From Macrostomum lignano (taxonomy: Eukaryota), in the NCBI GenBank assembly GCA_002269645.1, contig NIVC01001239.1, positions 1 to 64,000 on the forward strand: a stretch of 64,000 nt of DNA, given 5' to 3'. The stretch's first letter is position 1, and every line of letters begins with the position of its first letter. The notes under the pieces were generated by a model. That model did not search any database, was not told where the DNA came from, and saw nothing but the letters and a program-made list of their open reading frames with translations. Below are positions 9,889 through 62,091 of the stretch, in pieces. The position numbers were made by a program, and so were the translations under genes.

Positions 9889-10227
<339 letters not shown>

Positions 10228-13200: not shown

Positions 13201-13373
13201 CTTTCTGGAACTTTTTTTCTAGAATTACTGAATAACTTTGTTTGAATTACTTTGTTGAATAACTTTGTTGTTATAATTGTGAAATCTCAATTTGTTGAAA
13301 TAAAGAAAAAAGGGCAAGAACTTTCTAATCAACCAGATAATTTTTCCTACTGGACCCAGCATACGCTAATATA

Positions 13374-14058
13374 TGAGGGGTGTCCCAAAAGTTGGTGCAC
13401 TTTTTTCACTATAGCCTTTTCTGATCAATCAGAAATATTAAGTCTGTTGCAATTGAAAAGAGAATTATCTGCCCATTAAATGACTTTCTGTTTAGTTCTG
13501 TATTTGCTGGCATTCTTGAGATATGAGCACTTTTCTGCCCTACCCCCTGTGCTACTTTTACAAATTGCCATAGACCAAAGCTTTGTACCTGATGCACAAA
13601 ACAACAAAACATTCAACAAATCAATAAAACATTGGCAACATCAAAGCTGAGGAAAGAACAGATTTTGCTGATTGACAACATTGACAACATGCATAGCCAA
13701 TACCAGAAGTGTGCAGCACACCCAGTGGTGACTTTGGAGAAGCCTCAGGACAATGTTGATTAACTTTTAACTGTTCTTTCCTCAGCTTTGATGTTGTCAA
13801 TGTTTTGTTGATTTGTTGAATGTTTTGTTGTTTCCTGCATCAGGTACAAAGCTTTGGTCTATGGCAATTTGTAAAAGTAGCACAAGGGGTAGGGCAGAAA
13901 AGTGCTCATATCTCAAGAATGCTAGCAGATACAGAAATAAACAGAAAGTCATTTAATGGGCAGATAATTATCTTTTTAACTGCAACAGACTTGATATTTC
14001 TGATCAGTCAGAAAAGGCTATAGTGAAAAAAGTGCACCAACTTTTGGGACACCCCTTG
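13374..14058. mobile_element. Tc1/mariner-type MITE (685 bp, ~288-bp TIRs, TA TSD)
   Basis: 13374-13661 is the inverted complement of 13771-14058; termini ta|tgaggggtgtcccaaaagttgg ... ccaacttttgggacaccccttg|ta. Confidence 0.9.
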
Positions 14059-14103
14059 TACAATCCAAATTTTGGCCTGCCCTAGCTAGGTCTTAAACTT
14101 ATA

Positions 14104-15414
14104 TGAGGGTTGTTAGGAAAGTCCGCGATCAAACATGCATATCTTTTTTTGAGTCACTACTTTGTCTTGAAACTTTATACCATAGACAAATATCATACCC
14201 TGAATGTTTTAAATCAAGAGTGGTCTTGTTTGAGCCAGGAATTTCCTTCTTGCAGTGTTTTTAGTCACACACGGATTCCATCACTATGCTGAATAACGAA
14301 GAAGCAAAGCGAAGTGTCATTTGGTTTTTGTGGAAACAAGGAAAGCGACAGGCAGAAATTCTTTGCGAGTTGCAAGCAACGTATGGCGAATGCGCACCAT
14401 CAAAAACAATGGTCAACAAGTGGGTGCAACATTTTGAAGATGGCTAGGAGACAGTCTATGACCTTCCACGGAGTGGCCGGCCTGCCACCATGGTCAACAG
14501 GTCAAACATTGAGCTTGTGCATTGTGCTCTAGATGTTGACTGCCAAGCTACAGTGCGAGAGTTGTCAACCATTACTGGCATCTCATCAATGGCCATTCAT
14601 TCAATCCTGACGGTTGAGCTCGGTATGTCACACATTGTTGCTCGTTGGGTCCCGAAACTTCTGACTGACCAGCAGCAGCGAGAGCAGGTCCAGGTGTGTC
14701 AGCAGCTCCTCCAGTCATATTGCAATGATCCCAACTTTTTGGACCGGATTGTGACTGGGGATGAATCCTGGTTTCATTATAGTGAGCCAGAGTCTAAGAT
14801 GCAGAGCAGTGTGTGGAAGGCCAGCCATGAGCCCACACCTGTCAAGGCCCTGACTGCACCTTCAGCTGGCAAGCAAATGGCCACCGTCTTCTAGGACAAG
14901 GAGGTTATTCTGCTCATCGAATGGCTTCCTCGTGGTGCCACAATAAACAGTGAGTACTATATCCAAGTCTTGCAGAAGTTGCGTGAAGCCATCAAGGCCC
15001 AGCGGCGTGGCAAGCTGAGCCGTGGCATCCTGCTTTAGCACAACAATGCCAGGCTGCACACCAGCCAGGCAACAATGGCTGCCATTTCAGACCTTGGCTT
15101 CGAAGTGTTGCCACACCCGCCCTACTTGCCAGACCTCGCACCCAGTGACTTCTGGCTGTTTGGAGAGATTAAAAAAACCCTCCGAGGTCGCCAGTATAGC
15201 TCCTTATAGACCCTGGCATCGGCCATCAACCAGTGGGTCAGGGGGTCACCTGCCAATTTCTATGCTGCCGGCATTGAGAAGTTGCCTGAGAGGTGGCACA
15301 AGTGCATAAGTCTCAAGGGTGCCTACATTGAGAAGCAGGAAGAGTAGCGTTATATTTGTTCAATCCATTAAACTATTAGACACGTTTGATCGCGGATTTT
15401 CCGAACAACCCTCG
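14104..15414 (+). mobile_element. mariner (DD34D) transposon, 1311 bp, TA TSD, inactive
   Basis: ~30-bp TIRs (t/c)gagggttgtt(a/c)ggaaa(g/a)tccgcgatcaaac; TA at 14102-14103 and 15415-15416; YGAGGG-type termini suggest irritans-like subfamily (inference). Confidence 0.92.
14286..15347 (+). pseudogene. mariner transposase pseudogene (354 codons, four in-frame TAG stops, no frameshift)
   Basis: WVPKLLT, IVTGDESWFHY, LL*HNNARLHT (HDNARPH), HPPYLPDLAPSDFWLF. Confidence 0.9.
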
Positions 15415-15572
15415 TACTTTACCTATAAAAATCAAAACTCTATGTGTCTATGTGTCTGTCTGTAAACAATTTTGATTGCTATGGACTCCCAAACTGCTCA
15501 AACAAATTACACCAAATTTTGCACCCACCCTAAACTCACTATGGAGAATTTCTTACACTAACTTTAAATTTA

Positions 15573-15763
15573 GTAGAGAGAAAAGAGGAAAGATAAGAAA
15601 TAAGAGATGAGTGATGAGACAAAAGGAGAGAGAAGTGAGTGAGGAGAGAGAAGGGGAGAAAGAATTGAGAAGACAGGGGAGAGGGGAAAGGGTGAAAAAG
15701 GAGAGGAAAGAGGAGAGAGATTACAGAGGAGAAAAAGAGATAAGATAGGAAAAGCAGCGAGAT

Positions 15764-15795
<32 letters not shown>

Positions 15796-15910
15796 TGAGA
15801 AGAGATAAGAGAGAAAAGAGAAAAGAGAAGAAAGAGAGGAAAGGAAAGACAGGAGAGAAGAAAGAAGAGATGAGAGACAAGAGAGAAGAGAGGGAACAGA
15901 AGAGAAAATA
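15573..15910. repeat. AG-rich low-complexity tract
   Basis: Irregular GAGA/AAGAG runs. Confidence 0.8.
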
Positions 15911-16687
15911 GAAGTTTCAAAGGATGCAAGGGACATAGGCAGAGGCAAAGATAGAGTCCAGAGTTTGCCTGATATTCTACGCAGAACCCTAGCCAACAAT
16001 ATCAATATTTGCCTCAAATCCTAATTTTACACAAATGTATTCTATTTTATATTTAACTCTATCCTAACTATTAACAATTTTTTTGTTTGAGTTTGACCTT
16101 AGATGTTAGAATACATGCAAAAATAGTTCTGGGGATTAGAATTCTGGTTCTTAGTCATTTTTTCATCTGCCATTTTGTCATCTGGGTGTCATGTCTGGGG
16201 TGCTTACCTTGACTATGGTCACTTAATCATCTTAATTAACATGCACTACTTGAAGAGTGCCATTTTGTCATCTACCAGTCATAGCTCGTATTAGTTCCAA
16301 CTTCAAGTGAATTATTATGGCAATCAAATATATTTATTTGGAATCCTAATGATCCCAGTCATTTTGTTATCTTAATTGATAAAACCTGTCAAGTGATTGG
16401 TTCTGCTTACCATAGCTTATGGTTATTAAAAAAATAGTTTACTTTAACTCAAATCACACATAGATTGATTGGTTGATGACCAGGATGGAATTCTTGCTTG
16501 GGGGTAGGAAAATGCGCACGCACGTTTTTTGAGCAGTGTGCAAGCTGTAAAATAAGTCATAATGCAGATCATTATAGCGGGCCCATGCGCTAAAAAATGA
16601 AATTTCTAGTTTTTAAATTTTTACGCCAACATAAATTAGAAAGTTGTACTTTAAGTGTAAAGTAGCTTGAACACTATAATTTTTAGC

Positions 16688-17478
16688 TAGGGGTCAGACG
16701 ATATTGAATTTTCGAGACTTGAGATTGGCCTCTTCGAGATATTCGAGATTTGATTGAGATTTGAGACATATAGTGGAACAGCAAAAAATATTTAATATGT
16801 GAAATAAAGTAAATCCTCTAAATCTGCTACTGGCGGTAGGTCTATTAGACAAGCTCCCGGGATCCCAAGAACCGTCTCCAAAGGCACAGAATTCAAAATG
16901 TTAAATAAAATTTTGCCAACCCAGTAAAACAAAGTATCTGCTAACCATCATTAGCAAACAAAAATACAACTCATTGAAATAACCGGATTACACATTAAAT
17001 ATTCCCATGTGGATACGAGGTACCTAACTGACGAACTAGCAAGACAAAAGAAACCATCAACGTCACAATATGTTGAGTGTTGATCTTGGACGTCAACTTT
17101 AAGTAGCCGATGAATTGCTGGAAAATTAATTGTTTGAAGCAGAAATGCATTACATTACAAATAAATTGAAAATAGTAAATATATTGTTCAAAACAGTGCA
17201 CATTCTCTAATGCAAGCCATGACCATCAGCATCTGTATGCCAGCTATATATAAACTATACATTCTTTGTAACATGCAAAATTTAAACAAAATATTAACAT
17301 TGACACCATCAGGCTTTATGATATGATATTGCATGCTTCTTATAGATTGAAATGTTTTTTTGAACATTTAATTTTTATCTCGAATCTGGACATTTTTTTG
17401 AGATCGTGAAGTTGAGATCGAGATTTGAGAAAACCCTAAGATCTTGGATCTTGAGATCGAGATCTTGTCTGACCCCTA
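16688..17478. mobile_element. Non-autonomous hAT-type element (791 bp)
   Basis: 12-bp TIR TAGGGGTCAGAC / GTCTGACCCCTA; exact 8-bp TSD TTTTTAGC at 16680-16687 and 17479-17486; subterminal (C/T)GAGAT repeats at both ends. Confidence 0.85.
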
Positions 17479-18162
17479 TTTTTAGCAATTTCTTTAAAAA
17501 TTATAAGAGTTTCACTAAACTTTAAAGTAACTTTTTTTGATAAAAAACTATTATTCTTTGTTTTACTTTTGTTTAAAATTCTCTGGCATAAAAACAACCT
17601 TCCAGACTATGAAAAGTAGGAGAACTTAAGTGCGCATACATTACATGGCACATAGCCACGTAGAATGCATGTAAAAGTCAAATCCTATCTATGATTCTGC
17701 GGCAAACAGCTTCTTTGCAAGCGAATACAATGGAGTGTGCACACCTTCTTTAAGAGTGCATAAGTAGGCTCCTTTTCAGTGCACAAGTGTGCACGAATTT
17801 ACCAATTGCGTACAAATGTATAACAACCTAAAGACAAAGTATTCAGCATAACTAAATATTTAGCCACTTTGTCATATTATTTTTCAATCTACTTTGCTTC
17901 TGGTCTTTTTGTTATCTAATATGACAAAATGGAATATGACAATCTGACCAGTGACCAGAATTCCCTGGGTTTAAAATCCACGGGTTTCAACAACTTATTA
18001 GAAAACAAAAATAGTAAAATAGGCCTATTTATTTTTCAAAATTGGATACAAAAATTAATTTGTTGCTTTCTGTAAATAAGGCAAGAAGCTAAAATTAAAA
18101 AATAAGACTTTATTAGGCTAGGTCTATACTATTAAGAGTAAGAGGTTAAAATGTTTATTTAC

Positions 18163-19121: not shown

Positions 19122-21417
19122 ATAATGCTTAATTTTTCCTCAAAGAAGGCGACGGAACGCACGCGGGCGGAACGCCGGGGAAGACTGGCGCAACTCGATC
19201 ATGCGCTGGTTCGCACTCGCAAGCGCCGCCGCCGCGTCACCAACTGCGACACAATGGCTCTGCTGGCTCTTCGGTCAGACCCACAGATACTAGATCTAGT
19301 TCTAGTATCTGTGGCTCTGTGCGAGACTTGCGGCTCCACGACCATGCCTAGCTCTATAACAACCGCCAAAGAAGCGGCCTCGCGCTCTGTCGGAGACCCG
19401 CGTCAAGCGTCAATTCGCGGGTGCCTTCGTCGGCGCGCTTGGAGACCAGCGCGAGGCGGAGTATTCCGACATCATATCAGCATCGCCGCTAGAGCCGCTG
19501 CGGAGCAGATGGGCCCGCTGATGCGGCCAGCGCAGAAATCGCTGCCTATTTGGCAGAGCGACCCGACCATCAAGCAGACGCGGCTCAACATCGAGCGACT
19601 CCGCAGAAACCGGCGGCCCACGGGCGACGCTGAAGACGCCTTTCTCAGATGAGCGGCAGCAAGCCGCTGTCGACGACGCCTTCCGGTCCATCACTGCAGC
19701 CGGCCCCGACGTGAAGAGCCGCGGGCAGTGTGAACGGCCGTCCGGACCCTGACGGGGCGCAAAAAGCGCGTGGCGCTGGACCTTGCCGGCGACACCCCGG
19801 AGGAGCGCAGGAATGAATTGCGCGACTTCTTTCCCGGCATCGTGAACGCGCCCGCGTTGCCGCTCCTGCCAGTTTTGCGCTCTCTCTTGACACGCCGCTC
19901 CCAGCTGAGGAGGACTTCTTCACCAGCCCAGTCACCACTGAGGACGTTGCTGTTCGCTCGGAAAACATCAGGCGGCAAGGCGCTCGGCCGCGACGAAGTT
20001 CCGGTCGAAGCGCTGCGGCTCCGCTGTGTGGCCTCCCAGGTCACAGGCGTCATGAACCGCGTGCTCACCGGCGCCCCCGCGCCTACCGAGTGGACCGTCG
20101 TGCACATCGTGCCAATCCCGAAGAAGGCAGGGACAACGCGGAAAGAAGACCACCGCGGGATCTCTCTGATGTCCTGCGCCGCGAAGCTCTTCAACAGGCT
20201 GCTGCTCGATCGTCTGCAGTCGGTGCTGGACCCGTACCTGCGGTACGAGCAGAACGGATTCCGGCCGGAACGCGGTACAGTGACACAGATCCTCGAACTC
20301 CGCCGGGTCATCGAGGAGGCGCGCATCCGCCAGTCTACGCTGATCATTGTCTTCGTTGACTTTCAAAAGGCGTTTGAATCGGTGTTAAGAGCCGCGCTTC
20401 CATTTGTCCTTCGAGCCTACCGGGTCCAGCAGCTAATCGACGCTGTCATGGCGCTGTATCACGACACTCGAGCTGCTGTGGTGACGGCGGACGGCCTGTC
20501 TGACCTGTTCGATACTTCATCAGGAGTTTTGCAGGGCGACACGCTAGCGCCGTTCCTCTTCGTGCTTCTGCTGGACTGGGTGCTTCGGACCGCACTCCCC
20601 TCGGCTGACGAAGGCTTCCTGCTGCGCAGACGTATCGGTCGCCTGAGCGTGCTTGGCTACGCTGACGACCTCGCCCTCCTGTCCTCGTCCATTTAAGGCG
20701 CCCAGCACCAGATCGACAGGCTGGTCGAGGTGGCATCGAGAATCGGTCTGGTTGACAACACTCTGAAGACCGAGGTGCTGACAGGGACGACATCACAGCG
20801 GACCTGACGTGCCGCGGCGCAGACGGGCAGACGACCAGGCTCGCACGCTGCCAGCGGTTCACCTACCTCGGCGGTCTGGTGCCTCACGTGGAGAAAGACC
20901 TCCGGCGGCGCAGAGGACTTGCCTGGGCGGTCTTCCGTTCGATCCGGGTTGTCGTCCAGTCCGAAGCGCTGCCCGACCGCCAGAGGGCTTGCGGCTGTGG
21001 CAGGCGGTGGTCGAAACCGTCCTGCTCTACAACGCCGAAACGTGGACGCTGACGGCTACGCTAGAGCGGCAGCTGGACTCGGCGCACTCAGGGCTGCTCT
21101 GTGCGGCCTTTCGAGCTGATGAGACCGTCGGGACCGAGGCCCTGCGCTGCGCCTTGGTCGTATTAAGCTGCAGCGCCCATCCATCAGCATGCGCCGGCGG
21201 CGACTTCAACTGGCGGGTCACGTAATCCGGGCCGAGGGCTTCTGCCCCCAACCTGTTCAGGACGTTCTGCTGCTCACCTTGCAGGGCCCGTTCAGGCGGG
21301 GGATCAGGCCCAAACCCGTCGCGATACGTGGACTGCCTCCTACGCGACGCAGGGGCGCCCGACACTGCCAACGGGGCGGACTTCGTTCGCTCTCAGGCTC
21401 TGCGGCGCGCCATCTGA
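19122..21417 (+). mobile_element. Degenerate, 5'-truncated RTE-like LINE (end of APE + RT + C-terminal region), many frameshifts
   Basis: AQLDHALV...VTNC...RSD (APE end); IVPIPKK, HRGISLMSCAAKLFNR, EQNGFR, VDFQKAF, GVLQGDTLAPFLF, GYADDLALL; VETVLLYNAETWTL; very GC-rich; no TSD found. Confidence 0.85.
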
Positions 21418-22400: not shown

Positions 22401-22724
22401 CTAGTTGCGCTGGCTCTCGCGGCCGGCCCACAGCTGACCTTTGATCAGCTCGTCGCAGTCGATGCCGATCATGGCTTCGCCCAGGTCTTCGCTAACTCGC
22501 GCCAGAAACTCCGGATCTCTGTAGTGCGTCACCGCCTGCACCATAGCCTCGGCGCGCTTCTGCGGATTGGCGCTCTTGAAGATGCCAGAGCCGACGAACA
22601 CACCGTCCACGCCGAGTTGCATCAGCATCGACACGTCGGCCGGGGTGGCCAGACCGCCGGCGGCGAAATTCACTACGGGCAGGCGGCCCTGACGCTTCAC
22701 TTCTTTGAGTAGGCCGTGAGGCAC
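22401..22724 (-). CDS. PDX1: PDX1 exon 4
   Basis: VPHGLL...[38 protein letters not shown]...LGEAMIGI; TAG stop at 22401. Confidence 0.96.
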
Positions 22725-22975
22725 CTTGAGGGGTTGAAATAGTAGTGCAATATAGGTTTATGAGATTTATGAAATACATATTGCGCTACTAGAAATCATA
22801 TAGATATTGTTCAAAAGCTTCTTTAGATATTCTTCAGAGATTGCCTAGGGATTAATCAGAGACTTATCCCAAAGAGTTCCCAAGGGATTGCGCAGAGATT
22901 ACTCCAGCATCAATCTTTGCCCCTTGTTGCATAGAGTTAGTTCGCCTCCAGTCACAAGAACCAAATTCCGCGCAC

Positions 22976-23229
22976 CTGCAGCTGCTTAGCATATGAGTAC
23001 AGTTCGTCGTCGTCCATCACTTTAGCCGCGCGCATCTCCCGATTCAACGCCCTAGCGTGACGCACCGCCTCGATGACGTTGCCGGTACCGGCCTCGCCTT
23101 TGGTGCGCATCATGGCTGCGCCCTCCGCGATGCGACGCAGCGCTTCGCCGAGATTCCGACAGCCGCAGACGAACGGGATCTTGAAACTGTGCTTGTCAAT
23201 GTGGTTCTCTGGATCGGCTGGTGTTAGAA
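22976..23229 (-). CDS. PDX1: PDX1 exon 3
   Basis: (V)[57 protein letters not shown]...; second catalytic Lys in RTKGEAGTG; cag/gtgcg. Confidence 0.96.
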
Positions 23230-23479
23230 CTGTAGAGATTGATCACATTTTTTCAACAGTTAAAAGTGGATTCGATTACTGGTGGATTTGGATAATGGTG
23301 ATCGAAATATGGCGGGAGGCTTTACGTAAGATTTACGCTGATGAAGGTCAAACATCAAGGAGCAGAGCGTGTACATGCACACGCTCCGTGTCGGCCCGAT
23401 GAATTTATATTTTTGCTTCTTTGCCTAACGCCTATTTGCTACAGGGATGTACAGGATAAGGTCATATGACGCAACTCAC

Positions 23480-23681
23480 CCTCCGACTCGTCGATCATGT
23501 CAACTCCGATAGCTTGCAGAATCTGCGCCTCAGCAAAGTGGCCAATTCTGGCTTTGGCCATCACCGGAATTGTGACGGCGCTCATGATCTCTTTGATCAG
23601 CTTTGGATCCGTCATTCGAGCGACGCCGCCCTGCTTGCGAATGTCAGCCGGCACTCGCTCCAGAGCCATCACTGCGCACGC
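23480..23681 (-). CDS. PDX1: PDX1 exon 2
   Basis: [26 protein letters not shown]...[30 protein letters not shown]; catalytic Lys in VMAK; cag/gtgag. Confidence 0.96.
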
Positions 23682-23770
23682 CTGCAACGTAACGGTGGAT
23701 AGAAATTAGTCGACCATAGATTTGCTAAAACCATATGAAATCTTTTATAAATACTGCACTACCATCTTAC

Positions 23771-23899
23771 CCCCGCTTCCTCGGCAATCTTTGCCTGCTC
23801 CGCATTTACAACATCCATGACGAGTCCTCCTTTGGTCATCTTGGCTAGGCCAGTCTTTACCGTGTAGGTGCCAATCACTGAATCGCCGTTGCTGGTCAT
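23771..23899 (-). CDS. PDX1: PLP synthase subunit PDX1 (SNZ/PdxS), exon 1 of 4 (spliced CDS 909 nt, 302 aa)
   Basis: [43 protein letters not shown]; catalytic Asp in MDVV; GGG|gtaag donor. Confidence 0.95.
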
Positions 23900-24572
23900 T
23901 GTTCCGGGAATAAGGTGAAGCTGATGATAAAGGTGAAGTCTAAACTAACGACACGAAACGAATATCGAATGCAGTAGCAGCGACTCTCGCCTAGCGCATG
24001 TGCCGCCTCTTTAAATACTAGCCGTGCATCAGCGCAAAAGTTTTAGCAGCGTTTCTGGCCTGTCTCGCAGCTCATTGGGTCTGCAAATGTCAAGGGGCTG
24101 AGCAAACTTTCGCACTGTACAAACAGGGCTGCCCTCTCCCCCACCGAGAGAAAACGTGGGAAACTCTGCAACTAAATGCAGCCTTTCTCTACACCTGGCC
24201 ACTGTGCTGGGTGAGAGTGCTAACGAACTAGCGAGCAAATAATAGAAAAAACTGAGGGAGCTGAGGTTGTCTGTAATATGCGTTCCTGTGCGCAGAGGCA
24301 GAGAATTTCACCGGGAGTGAACAGTTAATAGCCTTCTGTACCGAGCGGTGCACAACACGCAGACAAATCGCCCAGTCCCAGCTGAGAGGACAGGAAAGTT
24401 AGCCAGCCACAGGTCCCAAGAATTCCGACGGAGGACCGCGTGTTGACTTAACCTGCCAATCTCACAAAGTCTGCTTCTTAAATTTTAATCGTGAGAAAGT
24501 GAGAGAAACTTTTCCATCCGACAGAACCCGAAGAGCAAACATCTGAGCAGAGTTTTCGGAGAACGCGGAGCC
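23900..24572. promoter_or_regulatory. Putative bidirectional promoter and 5' UTRs shared by PDX1 and PDX2
   Basis: 673 bp between divergent ATGs; TATTTAAA on the minus strand near 24012-24019; function inferred from geometry only. Confidence 0.6.
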
Positions 24573-24849
24573 ATGCCTCAACTAAAGATCGGATTGCTAG
24601 CAATTCAAGGTGCATTCATTGAGCACAGGAATCTGCTGGAGTCGGCTGTTGAACAGCTTCAGCAAGAGCAACGGCAGAAGCAGCAGAACTCGAAGGATTG
24701 CTACTCAGTTGAAGCAATCGAAGTCCGCAGGGGCGACCAGCTCACTGAGGACCTTGACGCGCTCATCATCCCGGGCGGAGAGAGCACCACAGTGGCAAAG
24801 TTTATGCAACAAAATGGACTGCTTGATGCATACAAAGTCTGGTTCAGCG
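24573..24849 (+). CDS. PDX2: PLP synthase glutaminase subunit PDX2 (SNO/PdxT), exon 1 of 4 (spliced CDS 693 nt, 230 aa)
   Basis: KIGLLAIQGAFIEH...DALIIPGGESTT; 3' end placed at a GC donor (G|gcaagt) that restores frame with exon 2. Confidence 0.9.
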
Positions 24850-25172
24850 GCAAGTGTACTTTAAATGCTATGGGCAAGGTTGCAAATAATTTTAGTAGCG
24901 CAAAAATATAGGAATTTACCTAGCTTAGCTCTAGAGTTGGGCGCTGTACTATTATTACTCTCAGTCACGTCTTTAGGCTTTGACGAGTCTCAGGTACAGA
25001 TTTCAGAAACATTTCTTAGCATAGACATGTCCATAATTTCCACTGTTTTGAAACAGCAGAAAAAATTTCCACTTTATACGTAGAAAAGAACTCAGATCAG
25101 TTTTTTAAAAGAGTAACAAGCTACATGTAAGCTTCACTGACATCCATGTATGCTACCTGCACTGAACTGCAG

Positions 25173-25267
25173 AGACCAACCCCAGAGCGGTTGTCTGGGG
25201 CATCTGTGCCGGCCTCATTGCTCTGTCAGATCGAGTGGTCGATATGAAAACTGGCGGTCAGACTTTG
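25173..25267 (+). CDS. PDX2: PDX2 exon 2
   Basis: (E)TNPRAVVWGICAGLIALSDRVVDMKTGGQTL with catalytic Cys (WGxCAG); ctgcag acceptor, TTG|gtaag donor. Confidence 0.92.
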
Positions 25268-26389
25268 GTAAGAGTAATTTTGGTTCGAATTCTTTGACGA
25301 CAAAGGCTTTCTCAATCCTTGCTCAAGGGGTCAGCGAAAGGTGGACGGTCATTTCATCGAAAACCTTTTCGTCAGTTATTCGTCATTTCGGAAAGTAACT
25401 GTGTGCATGCTTTGAAAGTTGGATTTTAATAAATATTTTTAAATCATAAATTTGATGAATGATGCCTTGTTAAAACAGGTCAGTATCGGAAAGTAACTGT
25501 ACGAGTACCTGTTGTTTTAAAGTGAAGTGTTTCTAAGAAAAATCACGTATATTCAAATACCTGGGGGAATCCAAGGACTGTACTTACGATGAGCACTGGA
25601 TCTGCCTCCTATAAAAAGCAATAACAAGTTTGTGCTAAAGAAATGAAAATCTCCTATCCGTAATTTTTTTCGGAAAACCTGCCTCCTAAAATTTTCCAAG
25701 AAACGAGGTTAACCGTCCAACTTGAGTAGTCTTTGGGGGAACCGTGTTGCATTATTTTGATCATCTGATTGCAAAAAATATTCATTACAACTTACTTAAT
25801 TATGCTTTTTCCTCTTAATTTTTTACACTAGTATCAGTCTAAAGTATTTACTTCAATTTAACTTTGAAATTACGCTCATGACTACTTTTTACCATTTGAC
25901 GAAATTTTCCACATTGGTTTTCTCATTATTATTAATTTAATCTAAACCCATGTGGAGACACGTTGCAGGAATAAAAGTCTCTCGGAAACTTCTGTTCAAG
26001 TATATGTAAAATAGCTACACTGTGTAGATTTGAAAGTCAATCTAGTTTTATAAAACATCAAAGAGATCTGCCGACCCGATTATAGAACTGTTCAACTGGG
26101 GCTGACACTAAAACCTTATCAACTAAGTAAGAATGTAATTAAGAATGCACAGGTGCCTCGCGCTGGTGCTACCTGACGAAACGGCTAACCAAAAACGTGT
26201 TTATCCAACTAACTAAAGAATTGCATTAATTATCGCATTACAATTTGGATACAAGCGCGTTGGGGCAAGAAAGCTTAAATTAGGCATAGCCAACTACCTA
26301 GGGGTGCAAATACAATCTGCTATCAGTTTATTCGTAGTTATTTTTTTCCAATTAAAATGCAACACTCAATGCTGAACTCTCGCTTACAG

Positions 26390-26498
26390 ATCCAAGGACT
26401 GGCAGTCACAACCGACCGAAATTTTTATGGAAGGCAAAGAGAAAGTTTTGAGTGTCAAATCGAACTCAAACCTGTTGAGGACATTTCCGATTGTAATG
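26390..26498 (+). CDS. PDX2: PDX2 exon 3
   Basis: IQGLAVTTDRNFYGRQRESFECQIELKPVEDISDCN (RNxxGRQxxSF motif); ttacag/gtgag. Confidence 0.93.
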
Positions 26499-26545
26499 GT
26501 GAGAGTATGGAGCGGTTTCAAATAGCAAATTAGATCAATTCTTTA

Positions 26546-27252
26546 TCTGGCGCCTCAATTCCTCATCTGGCGCGTCACTTCCTCATCTGGCGCGTCACTT
26601 CCTCATCTGGCGCGCTAATTCTTAATCTGGCACCTCAATTCCTCATCTGGCGCGTCACTTCCTCATCTGGCGCGCTAATTCTTAATCTGGCGCCTCAATT
26701 CCTCATCTTGCGCCTCAATTCCTCATCTGGCGCGTCACTTCCTCATCTGGCGCGCTAATTCTTAATCTGGCGCCTCAATTCCTCATCTGGCGCGTCACTT
26801 CCTCATCTGGCGCGCTAATTCTTAATCTGGCGCCTCAATTCCTCATCTTGCGCCTCACTTCCTTATCTGGCGCCTCACTTCTTCATCTGGCGCCTTAATT
26901 ACTCATCTGGCGCCTCAATTCCTCATGTGGCGCCTCAGTTGCTCATGTGGCGCCTCACTTTCTCATCTGGCGCCTCACTTCTTCACATGGGGCCTCACTT
27001 TCTCATCTGGCGCCCTAATTCTTCATCTGGCGCCTTAATTACTCATCTGGCGCCTCAATTCCTCATGTGGCGCCTCAGTTGCTTATGTGGCGTCTCACTT
27101 TCTCATCTGGCGCCTCACTTCTTCACATGGGGCCTCACTTTCTCATCTGGCGCCCTAATTCTTCATCTGGCGCCTTAATTACTCCTCTGGCGCCTCACTT
27201 CTTCGTCTGGCGCCTTATGGCACCTCAGTTCCTTATCTGGCGCCTCACTCCT
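26546..27252. repeat. 20-bp minisatellite filling PDX2 intron 3
   Basis: Unit ctggcgc(c/g)tca(a/c)ttcctcat with higher-order blocks. Confidence 0.92.
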
Positions 27253-27372
27253 TAATTCGTAATCTAAATATGGGACATACGCTCGTATATAATGTCATCA
27301 CAATAAACATCAGTTAACTTAAGCGAATATGCTTCTAAATTTAAATCAATATCCAATTAACCGATTCTGCAG

Positions 27373-27584
27373 AATCTTTTCCTGGAGTGTTCATTCGAGC
27401 GCCAAAAATACTCAGCGTTGAAAAGCCAGAGTCCGTTCGCGTACTCGCCACGGTCAACTCCTATCCCGTTGCGGTGGCCCAGGATCGAATCCTTGCCTGC
27501 AGCTTTCACCCGGAGCTCACGGAGGACCCACGGCTGCACCTGGTGCTGCTGAAGATAGTTCTGAGGAGCAAGGGCGAGCTTTAG
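27373..27584 (+). CDS. PDX2: PDX2 exon 4
   Basis: (E)SFPGVFIRAPKI...ILACSFHPELTEDPRLH; catalytic His-x-Glu (FHPE); TAG stop. Confidence 0.95.
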
Positions 27585-27793: not shown

Positions 27794-27866
<73 letters not shown>

Positions 27867-27870
27867 GTGT
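27767..27870. repeat. (GTCT)n microsatellite
   Basis: Tandem GTCT preceded by gtcttagt variants. Confidence 0.9.
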
Positions 27871-28279: not shown

Positions 28280-29264
28280 ATGAGAAGATTTTTGGCTTCG
28301 ATCTCAGTAAGAATCATGGCGGACTATTGGACTTTGGCTAGCAACAGGAGTTCGTTGGGAACGGTGTCTCCGACGTCTTTTCCTACAGCCGACTGGGACA
28401 CCCACGGCAGAGTGGTGCCGCTAACTGTGCTGCTCGTTCTGCTCATCTTCATCATAGTGTTTGGCAACAGTCTGGTCGTTCTAGCCGTGTTCTACGAAAG
28501 GCGCCTAAGGCTGCCCAGTAACTACTACGTGGTGAGCCTTGCAGTGGCGGACCTGGCCATTGGAATCGCGGTTGTGCCAATATCGGCCGTGTACGAAATC
28601 GCAACCCGTTGGCTCCTGGGACAGGCCCTCTGCAGGATGTGGATTAGCGCCGATATCACCTGTTGTACAGCGTCAATTATCAATCTGTGCGCCATCAGTT
28701 TTGATAGGTACCGAGCACTGTCGCAGCCCATGCTCTATCCGCAGTACTCGACTGCTAAGCGGTCCTGCATCACCATCACGGGAATCTGGGCTGCCTCTCT
28801 GGCCATCAGCACTCCCACACTGTTTGGAGTTGGCATTGAGAAGCGCCAATCTAATCAGTGCCTACTGGCTAAACGATCCCCGTTTGTAGTGTTCTCAGCC
28901 TGCGGCAGTTTCTTCATACCGCTCTGCATCATGCTAGTATTATATCGGCTGATTTTTAAAATAGCCAACAAACAGAGAAGAAAGATACAGCGCGGTCAGT
29001 CGGTTGGTTTCAGCCACTTGAACAACGATATGTACGCCGATAGCGGGTCTGAGATGTCGCTAAATCACAGTCCCTGTTTGCAATCAGCATCTGGTAGGCC
29101 GCTTTTGTTGAAGCAACAACAACAGCAGCAGCAGCAACAACAACAGCATCCAAATCGGCCTCACAATTTGCCCGCGTTAATCCTTCAGCGAGACTCCTGC
29201 GCCAGTTTCACAGGCATCGGAGTGCCGGCTTTTAAGAGTTCGCCTAAGGGGTCTGTGTCTTCAG
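28280..29264 (+). CDS. Aminergic class A GPCR (alpha1-adrenergic / octopamine-alpha / invertebrate dopamine-type group), exon 1: TM1-TM5 and ICL3
   Basis: FGNSLV, SLAVADL, WISADITCCTASIINLCAISFDRY (Asp3.32, DRY), FSACGSFFIP (Ser5.42/5.46); TCA G|gtgagc donor; start may be 28280 or 28316. Confidence 0.92.
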
Positions 29265-29589
29265 GTGAGCTCATGTTGACTATCGATTTTTAACAGGACT
29301 GGCAGTTATCAAAACCCAAGTTCCAATCCGCTTTAATTTGGGCGTCATTTAGAGTGTTTTCTTATATAAATTATTTTCGGATGACAAGACATTTCTGGCT
29401 TAGGAAATAGAGATTTCAATGTCGGAGCCAACGATCAAGTCTCTGATTTGAACTCAGAGAGTTCAAAAGCGGTCTCATCAGCAAGTTCACACTATTTGAG
29501 AGTGCTACTAAGAGAAATGGTTGTCTATGCTTCAAACTATGCTGCAACAATGCATTTAACTCAAAATTAATCCGATCCACCCGCCGCAG

Positions 29590-30047
29590 GAGACAGCATA
29601 GCGATTGCGTCGTCGTCGCACGCAGCCGCCCTCGCCCAGCAGCGACGCCAGAGCGGCAGGCGGCCCAAGCTGCTGGCCAAGAATCCGGTTGCTCAACGCC
29701 TCAGACGTCTCGGCTCGCACACGAAAGCCGCTAAAACTCTCGGCATTGTTGTTGGCGCTTTCGTCTTTTGCTGGGGTCCGTTCTTCTTCACTTACCTGCT
29801 GCACGGCGTCTGTTACTCCTGTCGAGTGCCGGACACCTTGGTGAAGTACTTCGTGTGGCTGGGCTACTGCAACAGCTTCCTGAATCCGATCATCTATCCG
29901 TGCTTAAACAAAGACTTTCGACGAGCATTTCGGAAGTTGTTAACGAGGCATTATTGCAAAAGGAAGTCGTTGGATTATTGGAATAGCAGACGGCAGTCGG
30001 TTACTCAGCTTATTAAGGCGTCGAGGCACCTGCGAGTAAGCATTCAG
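29590..30047 (+). CDS. Aminergic GPCR exon 2: TM6-TM7, helix 8
   Basis: cgcag|(G)DSIA...KAAKTLGIVVGAFVFCWGPFF...WLGYCNSFLNPIIYPCLNKDFRRAF; donors at 30036 (gtaagc) or 30048 (gtgagg), both phase 0. Confidence 0.92.
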
Positions 30048-30224
30048 GTGAGGATTGCAAAATAACTTCAATAAGTTTGTTAAAACTACTTCCAATAGTT
30101 TGTAGCGCACTATACTGCTTTCTAGTTTGTATGATTGTGATGAACGGACAATGTGGCTCTTACATTACACGTCCAATGTTTACTAGATGTTTTATGACTT
30201 CAACTGCTAATCCCCGAACTTCAG

Positions 30225-30553: not shown

Positions 30554-30784
30554 GTGGATACTTTGTGGATATACAAGACTAATATTCACATTTTATCGGA
30601 TTTTTGTCCCGTTCATTGTATAGACACAGTTTTAATCAGACAACTATCGGGCTACGTACACAGTTCACTGAGGTACTGTACCCTATGACCCATAATTAGA
30701 CTTTCCAATCAGCTACCCTCTAAACAAAAGTTCAACAGAAAACTTTAAACACAAAGTCCCTTTCAACTCCGATTATCTTCTCAG

Positions 30785-32234
30785 ATCCACCGATATGACC
30801 GATAAAGTTGACGGTGGACAGGGCGGATCGAATCTTACATCGGCAGCAGCGGCGGCTGCAGCTGCAGCAGCTTCAACTCTCGGCGGCGGTGGCGGTGGCG
30901 GAGGCAGCGGCGGCGGAGGCTGCAGCATCGACAGCAAAGATCCGGGCTTGAGCTCCGGTGTGTACTTCCATCATCATCACCAGCCCTTGCATCGCAGGCA
31001 GAGCAGTTTGAAGATAATACAGAAGCAGCAGAAGCACCAGCAACAGCAGCAGCAGCAGTACCATCCATCTCAGGCTTCGGCTAGTTCAACCGCCTATCAG
31101 CACCATCATCAGCAGCAACATCAGCGTCACCATCAGGAAGATCCAGACGCAATCATCTGCGAAGACGACGATCAAGAAAGCCAGCAGCTGCAACAGCCGG
31201 ACCAGCCTGTTAAGAAGAGAAAATCTCGAACCAACAGTCTACCGGCAATATTCGAGAAAATCGAAGTAAAGCTCTGGCAACGACGTCGGACTAGAAAGTC
31301 AAAAAAGATCCGCGACTGGCTCGCCTCAGACCAGTCGTCTACTGGAGTCAAGGACACCACGTCCTCGGTCACTGACATCAGCGACTCGGACGCTTTCGAC
31401 GATTCCGGGCCGCACGTCGGTTCGCGCATGAAAGAATCGGCGCTGTTCCACCACCCCATCAGACAGGCCAGCCATCCGGCCTGCGGCATGACCCGCCGGA
31501 ACACGGTCAGCGGAAATCGCCCAGAGCCACACCGACGACCGAGCCTGCTGGTCAACGACACGCTGATTGACTTCAACAACAGCCAGGACCATCGGCTCAG
31601 CATCTACACCATTGAAGAGAGTCCGCGCCGGGAGAGCGGCTCCTCCTGCAGCGGCTTCAGCTTCTCGCGCACCAGCGGCTTCCGTCTGGACAAAGCCGCA
31701 GCTTCATCTAGCGGTGGCGGCGGCGGTGGCGGCGGAAGCAGCACAGGGGGCGGCTTTGACCGTGAGGGCAGCGAAGTGTCGCAGGGCTCGCAGGGCGACG
31801 TCAGCGGCCAGACGAGTCCCAGATGCGGCCGGACGGCAAAGCGCGAATCGCTAACTGTCGAGTCCGTGTGGAGCCGAGTCAACAAGCAGCGACCAAGCGC
31901 CGATTCCAGCAACTCGTCGGCTAACGGTCACGAGAGGACGCCGAGCCCGTCGCAAAGTGTCATCAGTCAGAGCAGCGGCTTTGGTCTAGAGCATCTGTAC
32001 AGCGGCTCCAGTCCAGGTGGCGGCACAGGTGGAGGCAGTGGCGGCGGCGGAGCCAGCGGCGTCGGGTTCAACATCAGCCCGCCAGCGAGCAGCAAGACCA
32101 GCGCTGTGGTTGAATACGCGGACGGAGCAACGCAGACGGACGATCTGATTGAATGTCAGGCGAATCAGGACAGCGCCACGGAGCCCATTGCCAATCCCGT
32201 GTGCTACTTTGTTTACGAAGAGTCGTTCGTGTGA
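30785..32234 (+). CDS. Aminergic GPCR exon 4 (482-aa disordered tail ending YEESFV)
   Basis: cttctcag acceptor phase 2 is in frame with the 30795-32234 ORF; polyA/G/Q/H tracts, many RRxS/T sites. Confidence 0.7.
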
Positions 32235-34620: not shown

Positions 34621-35253
34621 TTGAGTCTATACTACTAAGATTGTGCTTTTAACGTCAAACTAAAGTGACGTACATTTCAAAGCTGAAAATCATGTGACAG
34701 ACAGACTCAGGCTGTTGTATCGCTGATGGCTCGGGCCAATACACTACATTAGTGACCCTTGTTCAGTGTGTGATATAGTTTGTTTATAAATTCATACACA
34801 AAAAGTCTCTAGTTGTCATTCATGAATAAGTTTCTCCCATGGTAAAGATAATGAGACATGATACGACATTAAAGCTAGACCCAGCCCTATGGAGCCGCTA
34901 TCCAACAGAATCAACAACTGTCCCATTTGAGCCTGAGAGCCAATCAAGGAACCGGGTACAGAGCCCACAGCCCACAGAAGCCACTAGCATGCGTCTCACT
35001 CAAGCAACTCAACAATTTCTCATATAAAAAAGCAACAAATAGCGTGCTAGCTTATAGCTTACCAAGGCATTGCCAGTTTCCCTGTCGCAGGATTGTTAAT
35101 AATTCAATTCTAAAAAAGCTTTCTAGTTGGCAGATAGACCGACAGACGGTGAGAGAGGGACAACAAGTAATCTACCGCTTTAGAAGTGTCTGCTAGAGCG
35201 CCACCATAATTGTTCTTTTAACGAGGACTGCTTTACGTCGCCCTGCTAACAGA

Positions 35254-35772
35254 ATGCTCCAGCGGTACAGATGCTTTCTGTTACTTAGAGTCTGCTTTTG
35301 CCTGATCATAGCATTGAAGACGTCATCAACCGCCAATGGATTGTCGTTCGATCAGCAGCCGTCGACGCAGCGCATGAACATCACCGGTGACCTGCTGCTG
35401 GGCGGTCTCTTCCCCATTCACGAGTCGGGGCCGGCTGAAGGGCCTCGGTGCGGGAAGATCAGCGAGAATCGGGGCATTCAACGGCTGGAAGCCATGGTGT
35501 ACGCTCTCCGGCTGGTCAATGAGAGGCGTAGCAAGTTGGGAATGCCGTTGCTGGGAGCTAAACTACTGGACACCTGCACTAGGGATACTTACGCACTGGA
35601 GCAGAGCATGGACTTCGTTACCGACCACCTCAGCTCCTTGGACGCCTCCTACGAGCATCATTGCCCGCAGTCTGCTTCCAGACTAAAGACCAGGCAGCCC
35701 GTTGCTGGTGTCATTGGAGCTGCTGACTCCTCAGTCAGCATCATGATTGCCAACATCCTGCGGCTGTTCAAG
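35254..35772 (+). CDS. Metabotropic glutamate receptor-like class C GPCR, exon 1 of 8 (predicted 1048 aa)
   Basis: Signal peptide; GDLLLGGLFPIH, RGIQRLEAM, LDTCTRDTYALEQS, GVIGAADSSVSIMIANILRLFK|gtaagc. Confidence 0.95.
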
Positions 35773-35782
35773 GTAAGCGACT

Positions 35783-35898
<116 letters not shown>

Positions 35899-36313
35899 TT
35901 TACAAAAAGTACAAAAGTACTTTTTATTCGCAAAAATGAACAAAAGGCTAATGATTGACAAAATGCATAACCAAGCAACATGAAGAACAGCTAAGTGCAG
36001 CTGATGGACAGTTCATTGATCTGTTGTGCACAGAAATGGGCGTATTCCAAACCCTTCCTTACCTATTTTATTTCATATCACTTTCTCTCCAAAGTCGTTC
36101 AAAAAACTGTACCCTACAGATGCATTTTAGTGACTCTCAAATTCATCTGCTGAGCAGTGAGAACAGGTGCAGCTCAAAACTGACCCCGCCCTAAAGCAAT
36201 GCGACTGAGCAGCGGTCTGGGTATAGCGGCTTTTGAACGCACGCAATGACTGCTGATGAGCCACTGATAAGGACAAGCTGGTTGAGCTGCCTGGCAATGA
36301 CTAGCCATTTTCT

Positions 36314-37905
36314 GCCTCACTCTCTCCCTCACTCTCTCCCTCACTCTCTCCCTCACTCTCTCCCTCACTCTCTCCCTCACTCTCTTCCTCACTTTCTCCC
36401 TCACTCTCTCCCTCACTCTCTCCCTCACTCTCTCCCTCACTCTCTCCCTCACTCTCTCCCTCACTCTCTCCCTCACTCTCTCCTTCACTCTCTCCCTCAC
36501 TCTCTCCCTCACTCTCTCCTTCACTCTCTCCCTCACTCTCTCCCTCACTCTCTCCCTCACTCTCACCCTCACTCTCTCCCTCACTCTCTCCCTCACTCTC
36601 TCCCTCACTCTCTCCCTCACTTTCTCCCTCACTCTCTCCCTCACTCTCTCCCTCACTCTCTCCCTCACTCTCTCCTTCACTCTCTCCCTCACTCTATCCC
36701 TCACTCTCTCCCTCACTCTCTCCCTCACTCTCTCCTTCACTCTCTCCCTCACTCTCTCCCTCACTCTCTCCTTCACTCTCTCCCTCACTCTCTCCCTCAC
36801 TCTCTCCCTCACTTTCTCCCTCACTCTCTCCCTCACTCTCTCCCTCACTCTCTCTCTTACTCTCTCCCTCACTCTCTCCCTCACTCTCTCCCTCACTCTC
36901 TCCCTCACTCTCTCCCTCACTTTCTCCCTCACTCTCTCCCTCACTCTCTCTCTTACTCTCTCCCTCACTCTCTCCCTCACTCTCTCCCTCACTCTCTCCC
37001 TCACTCTCTCCCTCATTCTCTCCCTCACTCTCTCCCTCACTCTCTCCTTCACTCTCTCCCTCACTCTCTCCCTCACTCTCTCCTTCACTCTCTCCCTCAC
37101 TCTCTCCCTCACTCTCTCCCTCACTCTCTCCCTCACTCTCTCCCTCACTCTCTCCCTCACTCTCTCCCTCACTCTCTCCCTCACTTTCTCCCTCACTCTC
37201 TCCCTCACTCTCTCCCTCACTCTCTCCCTCACTCTCTCCCTCACTCTCTCCCTCACTTTCTCCCTCACTCTCTCCCTCACTCTCTCCCTCACTCTCTCTC
37301 TTACTCTCTCCCTCACTCTCTCCCTCACTCTCTCCCTCACTCTCTCCTTCACTCTCTCCCTCACTTTCTCCCTCACTCTCACCCTCACTCTCTCCCTCAC
37401 TCTCTCCCTCACTCTCTCCCTCACTCTCTCCCTCACTTTCTCCCTCACTCTCTCCCTCACTCTCTCCCTCACTCTCTCCCTCACTCTCTCCTTCACTCTC
37501 TCCCTCACTCTATCCCTCACTCTCTCCCTCACTCTCTCCCTCACTCTCTCCCTCACTCTCTCCCTCACTTTCTCCCTCACTCTCTCCCTCACTCTCTCCC
37601 TCACTCTCTCTCTTACTCTCTCCCTCACTCTCTCCCTCACTCTCTCCCTCACTCTCTCCTTCACTCTCTCCCTCACTTTCTCCCTCACTCTCTCCCTCAC
37701 TCTCTCTCTTACTCTCTCCCTCACTCTCTCCCTCACTCTCTCCCTCACTCTCTCCCTCACTCTCTCCCTCACTCTCTCCCTCACTCTCTCCCTCACTCTC
37801 TCCTTCACTCTCTCCCTCACTCTCTCCCTCACTCTCTCTCTTACTCTCTCCCTCACTCTCTCCCTCACTCTCTCCCTCACTCGCTCCCTCACTCTCTCCC
37901 TCACT
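36314..37905. repeat. 12-bp polypyrimidine minisatellite (CACTCTCTCCCT)n, ~1.6 kb
   Basis: More than 100 units with recurring variants. Confidence 0.95.
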
Positions 37906-38399
37906 CTTTCACTTATCATCCCCATTTCTCTCTCTCCCACCCTCCTTTATTATCTCCAACCACTCTCTCCCTCATTATCACCCCAATTAACCACAAGCAA
38001 AAGCAAGCTCAGAAGCCAGAAAAAAACAATAGAAAGGAGCAACAAGAATCCTCCACAGAGCATCCGTGGCTTCTGTGACTTGTCAGCCACGCCCAGAAGA
38101 CAAGAGACAAATAAATAGAGTATTACACAGTTGAAGTCAACATAGCTGAGCTAGTATGGGCGTTCTTAAATGCACATATTCAATAAAGAAGAGTTTCTTT
38201 ATTCTCGGGAATAATAATTATTATTACTATTTCTTTTCTAATAATATATCCGGGGAAATTCACGATCAAATAGCCATTACCGGTCGGCATTATTCGAATG
38301 CTGTAAATTATAAATCCTATTTTATTGTCGATTTTCAACTAAGAACTAAACACAGTTTAGAACGAAATTATTTTGGGTAGAATATTTTCTAGCACTATA

Positions 38400-38770
38400 G
38401 CCTCAAATTTTGGCATCACAGCCTCAAATTTAGGCGCCACAAGCCCAAAGTTAGGCGCCACAAGCCCAAATTTAGGCGCCACAAGCCCAAAGTTAGGCGC
38501 CACAAGCCAAAATTTAGGCACCACAAGCCAAAATTTAGGCGCCACAAGCCCAAATTGAGGCGCCACAAGCCCAAATTTAGGCGCCACAAGCCCAAATTTA
38601 GGCGCCACACCTGAAATTTAGCGCCACAAGCCCAAATTTAGGCGCCACAAGCCCAAATTTAGGCGCCACAAGCCCAAATTTAGGCGCCACACCTGAAATT
38701 TAGCGCCACAGCTCAAATTTAGCGCCACACGAGAAATTTAGCGCCACATCGCGTAGGTTGACGCCAAATT
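38400..38770. repeat. 21-bp minisatellite
   Basis: Unit ttaggcgccacaagcccaaat. Confidence 0.9.
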
Positions 38771-39299
38771 TAGAAAAAGGCAAAGACAGAGGCTGAAAAA
38801 AGAAGCAAACAATGGAGCCAGAGAGCGTCTCCTCCATCTCTCTGGCTAATTGTATCGAATCAGTTAGGACTATCCTGGAAGCGGGGTCACCAGGCTAATC
38901 TAAAGTGTGTTGGTGCCCAAACAGAAAAAAATATATTTGAGGAAACCTGGAGTACCCAGGGCAGGAGCTGCAATTTGAGATAGAGAAATGGAGGATAGGG
39001 AGAAGGTTAGAGGCTCACTCGAACTTGTCCAGCAGCAGAAAGTTGCAGATTGCAGAACTTCGGGCCTTCTCGTCTCTCCTCTCCATCAGTGTGCGACAGT
39101 AAGAGTCGGCTCCGTAACTGGGGAGTTTTAGTACTATAGCTGACTTACTGACCGAATTTGATTAGCAACTGCCAACTACTGCAACCCTGGGGCCTGAGTG
39201 ACTACCCCGCTCACTCTAGTGTAGTTTGCTGGGCTCCCCCATCTCAACTCTACTGTTTTCGTATCTTTGCAACAGTGCAGTTATTTTTCTGCATTGCGA

Positions 39300-39495
39300 A
39301 GTGTTCTTTCGATACATATCGGATTTTTAGTCAGTAACTTTCTCACATTATCGAGTTCTACGACATTTATCTTTTTCTGCCTCGCAAAGCGTTATTTCGA
39401 TACATATCGGATTTTTTAGTCAGTAGCTTTCTCACATAATCAAGTTCTACAGCCTCTAATTTTTCTGCAAAGCAAAGCGTTCTTTCGATACATGG
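39300..39495. repeat. ~88-bp tandem duplication (~2.3 copies)
   Basis: Repeated ttcgatacatatcggatttttagtcagta(a/g)ctttctcacat. Confidence 0.7.
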
Positions 39496-39540
39496 TTAAA
39501 ATTGTTAATTTGATGGTTAAAATTAGTAATTAAATAGCTA

Positions 39541-62090: not shown

Positions 62091-62091
62091 C

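Follow-up and report, generated by a model that had tools for sequence, protein, structure and literature searches.

Can an animal make its own vitamin B6, and if it carries the necessary genes, were they inherited from its ancestors or taken up from elsewhere? Reviews state that animals, or most animals, are unable to make this vitamin (PMC7954711, PMC6071262). The question is raised by a pair of genes, here called PDX1 and PDX2, in the free-living flatworm Macrostomum lignano. We analysed them in a window of 64,000 nucleotides, the first 64,000 positions of contig NIVC01001239.1 (GenBank assembly GCA_002269645.1). The evidence makes it very probable that this is a nuclear, vertically inherited locus for pyridoxal 5'-phosphate (PLP) synthase. 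The pair is real but ordinary: it is an ancestral animal pair such as many invertebrates possess, and it brings no new enzyme, pathway or mechanism.

PDX1 is encoded on the minus strand by four exons, with GT-AG borders at every intron (Table 1), and its coding sequence of 909 nt translates into 302 amino acids. The range of this coding sequence is that of a called 302-aa SOR_SNZ gene on the same contig, and the protein is the deposited PAA70401.1 of M. lignano. Against the Pfam profile SOR_SNZ (PF01680, curated cut-off 27 bits) it scores 362.9 bits (E=6.8e-109) and spans profile positions 2-207 of 207. Solved chains of PdxS and of Arabidopsis PDX1.3 match its residues 11-295, the alignment with the PDX1.3 structures reaching E=7e-133. 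The catalytic residues D29, K86 and K154 are present in the motifs MDVV, PVMAKAR and RTKGEAG, and correspond to D24, K81 and K149 of B. subtilis.

PDX2 lies on the plus strand, also in four exons, with a coding sequence of 693 nt for 230 amino acids. It matches the Pfam profile SNO (PF01174, curated cut-off 27 bits) with 157.6 bits and E=4.4e-46, and solved PdxT chains, that of Geobacillus included, with E=1e-34. The Cys-His-Glu triad (C104, H206 and E208) is present and, in the alignment, falls on the corresponding motifs of Geobacillus PdxT. Its introns have a GC content of 36-49%, and intron 1 is of the GC-AG type in the 230-aa model. A splice from a GT donor after position 24853 breaks the reading frame, and the GC donor was used instead. 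Another GT donor, after 24878, combined with an acceptor at 25174/25175, gives an alternative protein of 239 aa. We prefer the 230-aa model because it is 100% identical to the deposited M. lignano protein PAA70402.1 (model P0121) and because the position of its phase-1 intron 1 matches that of annelids. Both subunits are therefore complete and intron-containing, with their catalytic residues intact, as a preliminary sequence-only reading of this DNA had held.

Table 1. Features of the PDX1/PDX2 locus and its surroundings, with positions counted from the first nucleotide of the window.
Feature	Position	Strand	Remarks
Protein kinase exon	9889-10227	-	
PDX1 exon 4	22401-22724	-	stop codon included
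PDX1 exon 3	22976-23229	-	carries K154 in RTKGEAG
PDX1 exon 2	23480-23681	-	carries K86 in PVMAKAR
PDX1 exon 1	23771-23899	-	start codon at 23899; residues 1-43; carries D29
Inter-gene spacer	23900-24572		673 bp from one start codon to the other; presumed 5' UTRs and bidirectional promoter serving both genes
PDX2 exon 1	24573-24849	+	GGESTT motif; 3' end at GC donor G/GCAAGT
PDX2 exon 2	25173-25267	+	catalytic C104 in GICAG
PDX2 exon 3	26390-26498	+	RNFYGRQ motif
Minisatellite	26535-27215		within PDX2 intron 3; 20-bp unit, 34 copies; 140-bp higher-order unit
PDX2 exon 4	27373-27584	+	H206 and E208 in FHPELT; stop codon
Rhodopsin-type GPCR	28280-30062	+	
Class C GPCR	35197-50877	+	ANF_receptor, NCD3G and 7tm_3 domains

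The head-to-head arrangement seen in that first reading is equally real, the two start codons facing each other across the 673-bp spacer. This spacer presumably acts as a shared bidirectional promoter, and divergent transcription from it would put both subunits of the enzyme complex under common control. By its family, PDX1 (SNZ/PdxS type) would be the (beta/alpha)8-barrel synthase that forms pyridoxal 5'-phosphate from ribose 5-phosphate, glyceraldehyde 3-phosphate and ammonia, while PDX2 (SNO/PdxT type) would be the class I glutaminase releasing that ammonia from glutamine. As members of these families, PDX1 would assemble into a dodecamer and PDX2 would need to bind PDX1 for its glutaminase activity. 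With such a gene pair it is plausible that M. lignano makes its own vitamin B6. There appear to be three copies of the pair in the assembly: three contigs each carry one copy of each gene, and the protein accessions are consecutive within each PDX1/PDX2 pair.

Host genes might nevertheless be decaying relics, or serve some purpose other than B6 supply, for instance in stress or singlet-oxygen protection, with the vitamin still needed from the diet. The state of PDX2 lends itself to such a reading. Its closest matches outside Macrostomum, chytrid fungi among them, are just 38-44% identical, and the protein carries a Gln-rich insert of 20 residues in addition to the GC-AG intron of its gene. Against this, both frames are intact with all catalytic residues in place, and the two further copies, for which a second PDX2 sequence is deposited, likewise keep a 230-aa frame. 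PDX1 moreover is maintained by selection. An uninterrupted 302-aa PDX1 orthologue is present in five Logan contigs (SRR28338163 to SRR28338167, 1.25-1.36 kb long) from a close relative; they are 85% identical to the M. lignano DNA and colinear with it over all three predicted junctions, and the comparison gives a dN/dS of 0.019. These intron-less, transcript-like contigs and the low ratio support the predicted splicing of PDX1 and purifying selection on it. They cover PDX1 only, and no transcripts of PDX2 were found. A role in stress would in any case still act through PLP synthesis and be compatible with B6 supply, and we consider decay or a role apart from B6 quite improbable.

The sequence-only reading had left two origins side by side, ancestral retention and horizontal acquisition followed by intron gain. 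Transfer from a bacterium, a fungus or an alga would agree with the lack of the pathway in the best-studied animals, and the low identity of PDX2 to its nearest matches, chytrid proteins included, could be read in the same way. There is also a precedent among animals: the B6 genes of the cyst nematode Heterodera glycines have been reported as bacterial acquisitions, according to the account of Craig et al. 2008 given in PMC4901422. What decides between the two origins are the intron positions and the tree of PDX1.

All three introns of PDX1 match sponge, annelid or tunicate genes in both position and phase. Intron 1 (phase 0) is common to Owenia, Capitella, Clavelina and Dysidea, intron 2 (phase 1, in ESE/VLT) to all five other animals compared, and intron 3 (phase 0, after QLQ) to the tunicate Clavelina. 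In PDX2, intron 2 (phase 0, before I(Q/G)G) is common to all six animals compared, and introns 1 and 3 match annelid positions. PDX2 models entered the comparison only after a check of their splice signals and of their lengths against the annotated products; those of Capitella (223 aa, annotated as 228) and Clavelina (235 aa, annotated as 246) are approximate, either at the N-terminus or at a single junction. The trees, built by neighbour-joining with limited taxon sampling, are of unequal strength. For PDX1 the flatworm gene falls within an animal clade of 100% bootstrap; for PDX2 the animals group together with less than 50% bootstrap, on a tree with a long flatworm branch. Many invertebrates have annotated PDX1 homologues, and the named top matches of the flatworm PDX1 are animals.

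Since introns are shared with other animals (all three of PDX1 and at least intron 2 of PDX2, with sponge, annelid, mollusc or tunicate genes) and PDX1 sits in a fully supported animal clade, horizontal transfer is without support. The same divergent gene order in five other animals also stands against it. The flatworm pair resembles that of cyst nematodes in that an animal genome encodes the DXP-independent pathway, but differs in having introns and gene order shared with animals and a PDX1 placed among them; neither nesting in a non-animal donor clade nor a lack of animal-shared introns, the marks of a cyst-nematode type of acquisition, was found. An origin by transfer with later intron gain is therefore highly improbable, and of the two origins ancestral retention is the one that stands. 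The pair persists in numerous lineages of invertebrates and has disappeared from vertebrates, insects and C. elegans.

PDX1 and PDX2 are genuine host genes of M. lignano. Exons of a kinase, a rhodopsin-type GPCR and a class C GPCR, together with retrotransposons, are found on the same contig and rule out contamination, in agreement with the first reading of the locus; its more specific naming of two of these neighbours as MK2 and mGluR was not confirmed. Although M. lignano cultures are fed diatoms and the PDX1 exons are GC-rich (60% in the coding sequence, 72% at third codon positions) beside AT-rich introns at 35-43% GC, a contaminant (food diatom, fungus or protist) or a chimeric contig is scarcely credible, as the pair is flanked by multi-exon animal genes on one contig of 248,763 bp, a (TGTC)n repeat directly downstream of PDX2 recurs across the window, three contigs carry the paired copies with their consecutive accessions, and the introns and the PDX1 clade are those of animals.

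The vertically inherited pair is thus to be compared first with those of other invertebrates. The B6 pathway is recorded in sponges (PMC7954711, in a passage citing Seack 2001) and is host-encoded in a snail (PMC7895826). The SNZ/SNO genes of sponges (Suberites domuncula SNZERR; Seack et al. 2001, Biochim Biophys Acta 1520:21), like the invertebrate genes annotated as "SNZERR-like" or "PdxT-like", belong to the same two families as the flatworm pair, and the invertebrate homologues are 74-80% identical to flatworm PDX1. Besides intron positions, these animals share its gene order. SNO on the minus strand and SNZ on the plus strand are divergent neighbours in the annelids Owenia and Capitella, the tunicate Clavelina, the sponge Dysidea and the abalone Haliotis; the spacer of Haliotis measures 5722 bp, and those of the other four range from 228 to 1067 bp. 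In Amphimedon, Capsaspora and a chytrid the two genes are not linked. The flatworm differs from the other invertebrates in several respects. It has kept three PDX1 introns, against about 7-8 in Dysidea, the annelids and the tunicate and 6 in Amphimedon; its PDX2, with the Gln-rich insert and the GC-AG intron, is far more divergent than theirs; and its assembly contains three copies of each gene with paired consecutive accessions.

Beyond animals, the yeast SNZ/SNO genes resemble the flatworm pair in encoding a two-subunit PLP synthase from head-to-head genes; Capsaspora and the chytrid, as noted, have the two genes apart. The yeast genes are without introns, are present in multiple copies and have partly thiamine-linked roles. 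Their head-to-head order is described for SNZ1-3/SNO1-3 (PMC3303733), and the title of PMC6385983 connects SNZ3 with thiamine. The Bacillus subtilis pdxS-pdxT and plant PDX1/PDX2 genes share the catalytic residues of the flatworm pair and its predicted chemistry. Bacterial pdxS-pdxT forms a co-directional operon and plant PDX1 and PDX2 are unlinked; the flatworm genes, in contrast, are divergent and carry spliceosomal introns. Divergent PDX2/PDX1 might be a very old conserved gene-order unit that the flatworm has in common with sponges, annelids, a mollusc and a tunicate, and perhaps also with yeast, and in which a presumably shared promoter balances the subunits. We advance this proposal tentatively, doubting it somewhat more than we believe it.

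These comparisons reduce the novelty of the locus, since the exact models were already deposited, invertebrate homologues are annotated, the divergent pair recurs and the pathway is in the literature. The sequence-only reading overstated it in this respect: it had itself allowed that a linked pair common among invertebrates would make the finding less new, and five other animals have the pair. The M. lignano locus is a further clear case of invertebrates keeping the ancestral two-gene pathway, and it cautions against presuming B6 auxotrophy in models of invertebrate nutrition or symbioses. The literature searched contained no paper linking M. lignano with vitamin B6. This flatworm is genetically tractable, and it is a possible animal model for B6 prototrophy and for its loss in most model animals.

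Two minor observations concern PDX2. Older UniRef models splice the gene differently, and the apparent UniRef paralogues P0122 to P0124 are really mis-spliced models of a near-identical copy and not divergent paralogues. The minisatellite noticed on first reading is real and lies wholly within intron 3 of the gene.

The PDX1 and PDX2 genes of Macrostomum lignano, encoding the synthase and glutaminase subunits of a pyridoxal 5'-phosphate (PLP) synthase, lie head to head with facing start codons 673 bp apart, and both splice into full open reading frames with intact catalytic residues, as the sequence-only reading had claimed. PDX1, on the minus strand, joins four exons into a 909-nt frame of 302 aa, with introns of 89, 250 and 251 bp, each GT-AG. 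Its product covers the whole Pfam SOR_SNZ profile (E=6.8e-109), aligns over residues 11-295 with solved chains of Arabidopsis PDX1.3 (E=7e-133) and retains D29, K86 and K154. On the plus strand, the four exons of PDX2 form a 693-nt frame of 230 aa, which matches the SNO profile (Pfam, E=4.4e-46), aligns with PdxT chains of solved structure (E=1e-34), retains C104, H206 and E208, and carries an extra Gln-rich stretch of ~20 residues close to its N-terminus. GC content at third codon positions is 0.72 in PDX1 and 0.48 in PDX2, despite their being neighbouring genes with the same origin, a gap that may reflect expression-linked codon bias.

Two in-frame solutions exist at the exon 1/2 junction of PDX2: a GC donor (G/GCAAGT) after 24849 yields 230 aa, and a GT donor after 24878, with acceptor 25174/25175, yields 239 aa. 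The 230-aa form was adopted as the predicted model because it is 100% identical to the deposited M. lignano protein PAA70402.1 and because its intron 1, in phase 1, coincides with an annelid intron. Intron 1 of the deposited model (24849-25173) is thus of the GC-AG type, and its GCAAGT donor is perfect. For a near-identical PDX2 copy, older UniRef models give three other splicings around this intron, including the skipping of exon 2 or exon 3; these models (P0122 to P0124), like a 938-aa PDX1 fusion in UniRef (P0244), were rejected as mis-spliced or fused predictions.

Features of the PDX1/PDX2 pair and of the surrounding window
Feature	Position	Strand	Basis
PDX1 exons	23771-23899, 23480-23681, 22976-23229, 22401-22724	minus	spliced gene model
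PDX2 exons	24573-24849, 25173-25267, 26390-26498, 27373-27584	plus	spliced gene model
Minisatellite, 20-bp unit, 34 copies (PDX2 intron 3)	26535-27215		
Non-LTR retrotransposon (endonuclease, reverse transcriptase, RNase H domains)	4453-7887	plus	domain match
Protein kinase exon	9889-10227	minus	domain match
Second reverse transcriptase fragment	19734-20693	plus	domain match
Rhodopsin-type GPCR	28280-30062	plus	domain match
Class C GPCR, multi-exon (ANF_receptor, NCD3G, 7tm_3)	35197-50877	plus	domain matches
(TGTC)n/(GACA)n microsatellite arrays	1125-1532, 7925-8331, 27794-27868, 52923-53336, 54465-55259, 62029-62948, 63695-64000		
Very long simple repeats, extreme strand skew	36177-38115, 59361-61682		

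The pair was already in the databases. A 302-aa SOR_SNZ gene had been called at identical PDX1 coordinates on NIVC01001239.1 (assembly GCA_002269645.1; 248,763 bp), whose first 64 kb make up the window and where PDX2 likewise occupies 24573-27584; PDX1 is deposited as PAA70401.1 and named pyridoxal 5'-phosphate synthase in UniRef. The UniRef cluster listing holds three deposited copies each of PDX1 and PDX2, with consecutive accessions for each copy (PAA70401/70402, PAA74998/74999, PAA87169/87170), which implies three copies of an adjacent pair, the adjacency of the other two being deduced from the order of their accessions.

A contaminant origin can be rejected, in agreement with the sequence-only reading, since the same window holds animal-type GPCRs, a kinase and retroelements, and the (TGTC)n repeat directly downstream of PDX2 recurs throughout it. 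The host-type minisatellite described in that reading was also recovered, in PDX2 intron 3.

Spliced relatives of PDX1 were found in five transcript-like Logan contigs of 1253-1355 bp (SRR28338163 to SRR28338167), most plausibly from a related macrostomid, each with an uninterrupted 909-nt PDX1 frame. The encoded 302-aa protein differs from the window PDX1 at 10 residues (96.7% identity). BLAST matches of a contig on the window break at or near the predicted exon borders, and an ungapped comparison of the two coding sequences is continuous over all three junctions. Overall the DNA is 85% identical; the first two codon positions agree at 97-98% of sites and the third at 60%. dN/dS is 0.019, with dS about 1.0. 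Because they run intron-less across the junctions and show so low a dN/dS, these contigs, from a probable relative and not from M. lignano itself, support the predicted splicing of PDX1 and strong purifying selection on it. The homologue matches included no PDX2 counterpart from these five runs, and no PDX2 transcript comparable to the PDX1 contigs was found.

Two origins had been proposed, ancestral retention or horizontal acquisition followed by intron gain, and the proposed comparison of introns and trees favours the former. Named PDX1 matches (74-80% identity) are annotated proteins from annelids, a tunicate, copepods and sponges. Each protein was aligned exactly to its own locus and its introns mapped onto the protein alignment. 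Each of the three PDX1 introns of the flatworm has a counterpart of the same position and phase in other animals: the first is common to the annelids Owenia and Capitella, the tunicate Clavelina and the sponge Dysidea, the second to all five species compared, and the third to Clavelina. The remaining four or five ancestral introns have been lost in the flatworm. PDX2 intron 2 (phase 0, immediately before the conserved I-G/Q-G) is shared with Dysidea, Owenia, Capitella, the abalone Haliotis and Clavelina, and absent in Capsaspora; introns 1 and 3 agree with annelid introns in phase, their agreement in position falling within gap-rich loops. In a neighbour-joining tree rooted on Caldilineaceae PdxS, flatworm PDX1 lies inside an animal clade with 100% bootstrap, in which sponges form a sub-clade and whose sister group is a chytrid fungus. 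Animal sequences also group in the PDX2 tree, though with <50% support and a long flatworm branch. Transfer followed by intron gain is contradicted by these shared introns and trees, and the pair appears to be vertically inherited, retained from an ancestor. As for the Caldilineaceae metagenome-assembled genomes (P0212 and P0069), whose PdxS rooted the PDX1 tree, their PdxT groups with Capsaspora, Creolimax and a chytrid in the PDX2 tree (100% bootstrap); bin contamination, gene transfer or an artefact of the tree could each account for this.

The proposed synteny survey found the same divergent layout, with SNO upstream of an oppositely oriented SNZ, in five other animals, with spacers of 780 bp in Owenia, 427 bp in Capitella, 1067 bp in Clavelina, 228 bp in Dysidea and 5.7 kb in Haliotis. 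No such neighbouring pair occurs over 10 kb in Amphimedon or Capsaspora, or over 8 kb in Gaertneriomyces, a chytrid. Since Dysidea and bilaterians share it, the arrangement would be at least as old as their common ancestor. Yeast SNO/SNZ pairs are likewise head to head (PMC3303733).

Judged by homology with the enzymes characterised in bacteria, plants, yeast and Plasmodium, PDX2 would hydrolyse glutamine and hand the ammonia to PDX1, and the two subunits would stay co-expressed through divergent transcription out of the short spacer between their genes. On the basis of these enzyme steps, M. lignano may be a B6 prototroph. A review describes 'most animals' as without the B6 genes (PMC6071262); the pathway is recorded in 'some sponges' in a passage of PMC7954711 citing Seack et al. 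2001, and in the vent snail Gigantopelta B6 synthesis is by the host only (PMC7895826). Cyst nematodes acquired their B6 genes horizontally, according to a passage of PMC4901422 citing Craig et al. 2008, whereas the flatworm pair shares introns with other animals. No paper linking M. lignano to vitamin B6 was found in the literature searched. The sequence-only reading of the gene pair was correct, and its novelty is reduced: these are already annotated, ancestrally retained genes that recur in other animals, an example from flatworms that is new to the literature and not a new kind of system.

Minor observations concern the flanking sequences. In the Dysidea avara locus (L004; features at 1113-2927, 9009-9772, 10001-17715 and 22490-27217), a second SNZ copy lies nearby in convergent orientation, and SNO is separated by 6 kb from the gene of a PLP-dependent decarboxylase (PF00282), which places a PLP-using enzyme beside the PLP synthase pair. 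In the flatworm window, the retrotransposon region (2478-7887, plus strand) is apparently intact, its three domains being held by a 1145-aa ORF preceded by a 549-aa ORF without Pfam match, possibly ORF1. The second reverse transcriptase fragment lies ~1.7 kb past the PDX1 3' end, and the GC-rich block at 19-21.5 kb resembles a decayed retroelement. Directly downstream of the rhodopsin-type GPCR exons, a 512-aa open frame (30696-32231, plus strand) contains a stretch of alanines and matches no Pfam family. The simple repeats at 36-38 kb, with a GC skew of -0.87, translate as SEGE/LSPS-type repeats in every frame, and the array at ~60-61.7 kb is related to them.
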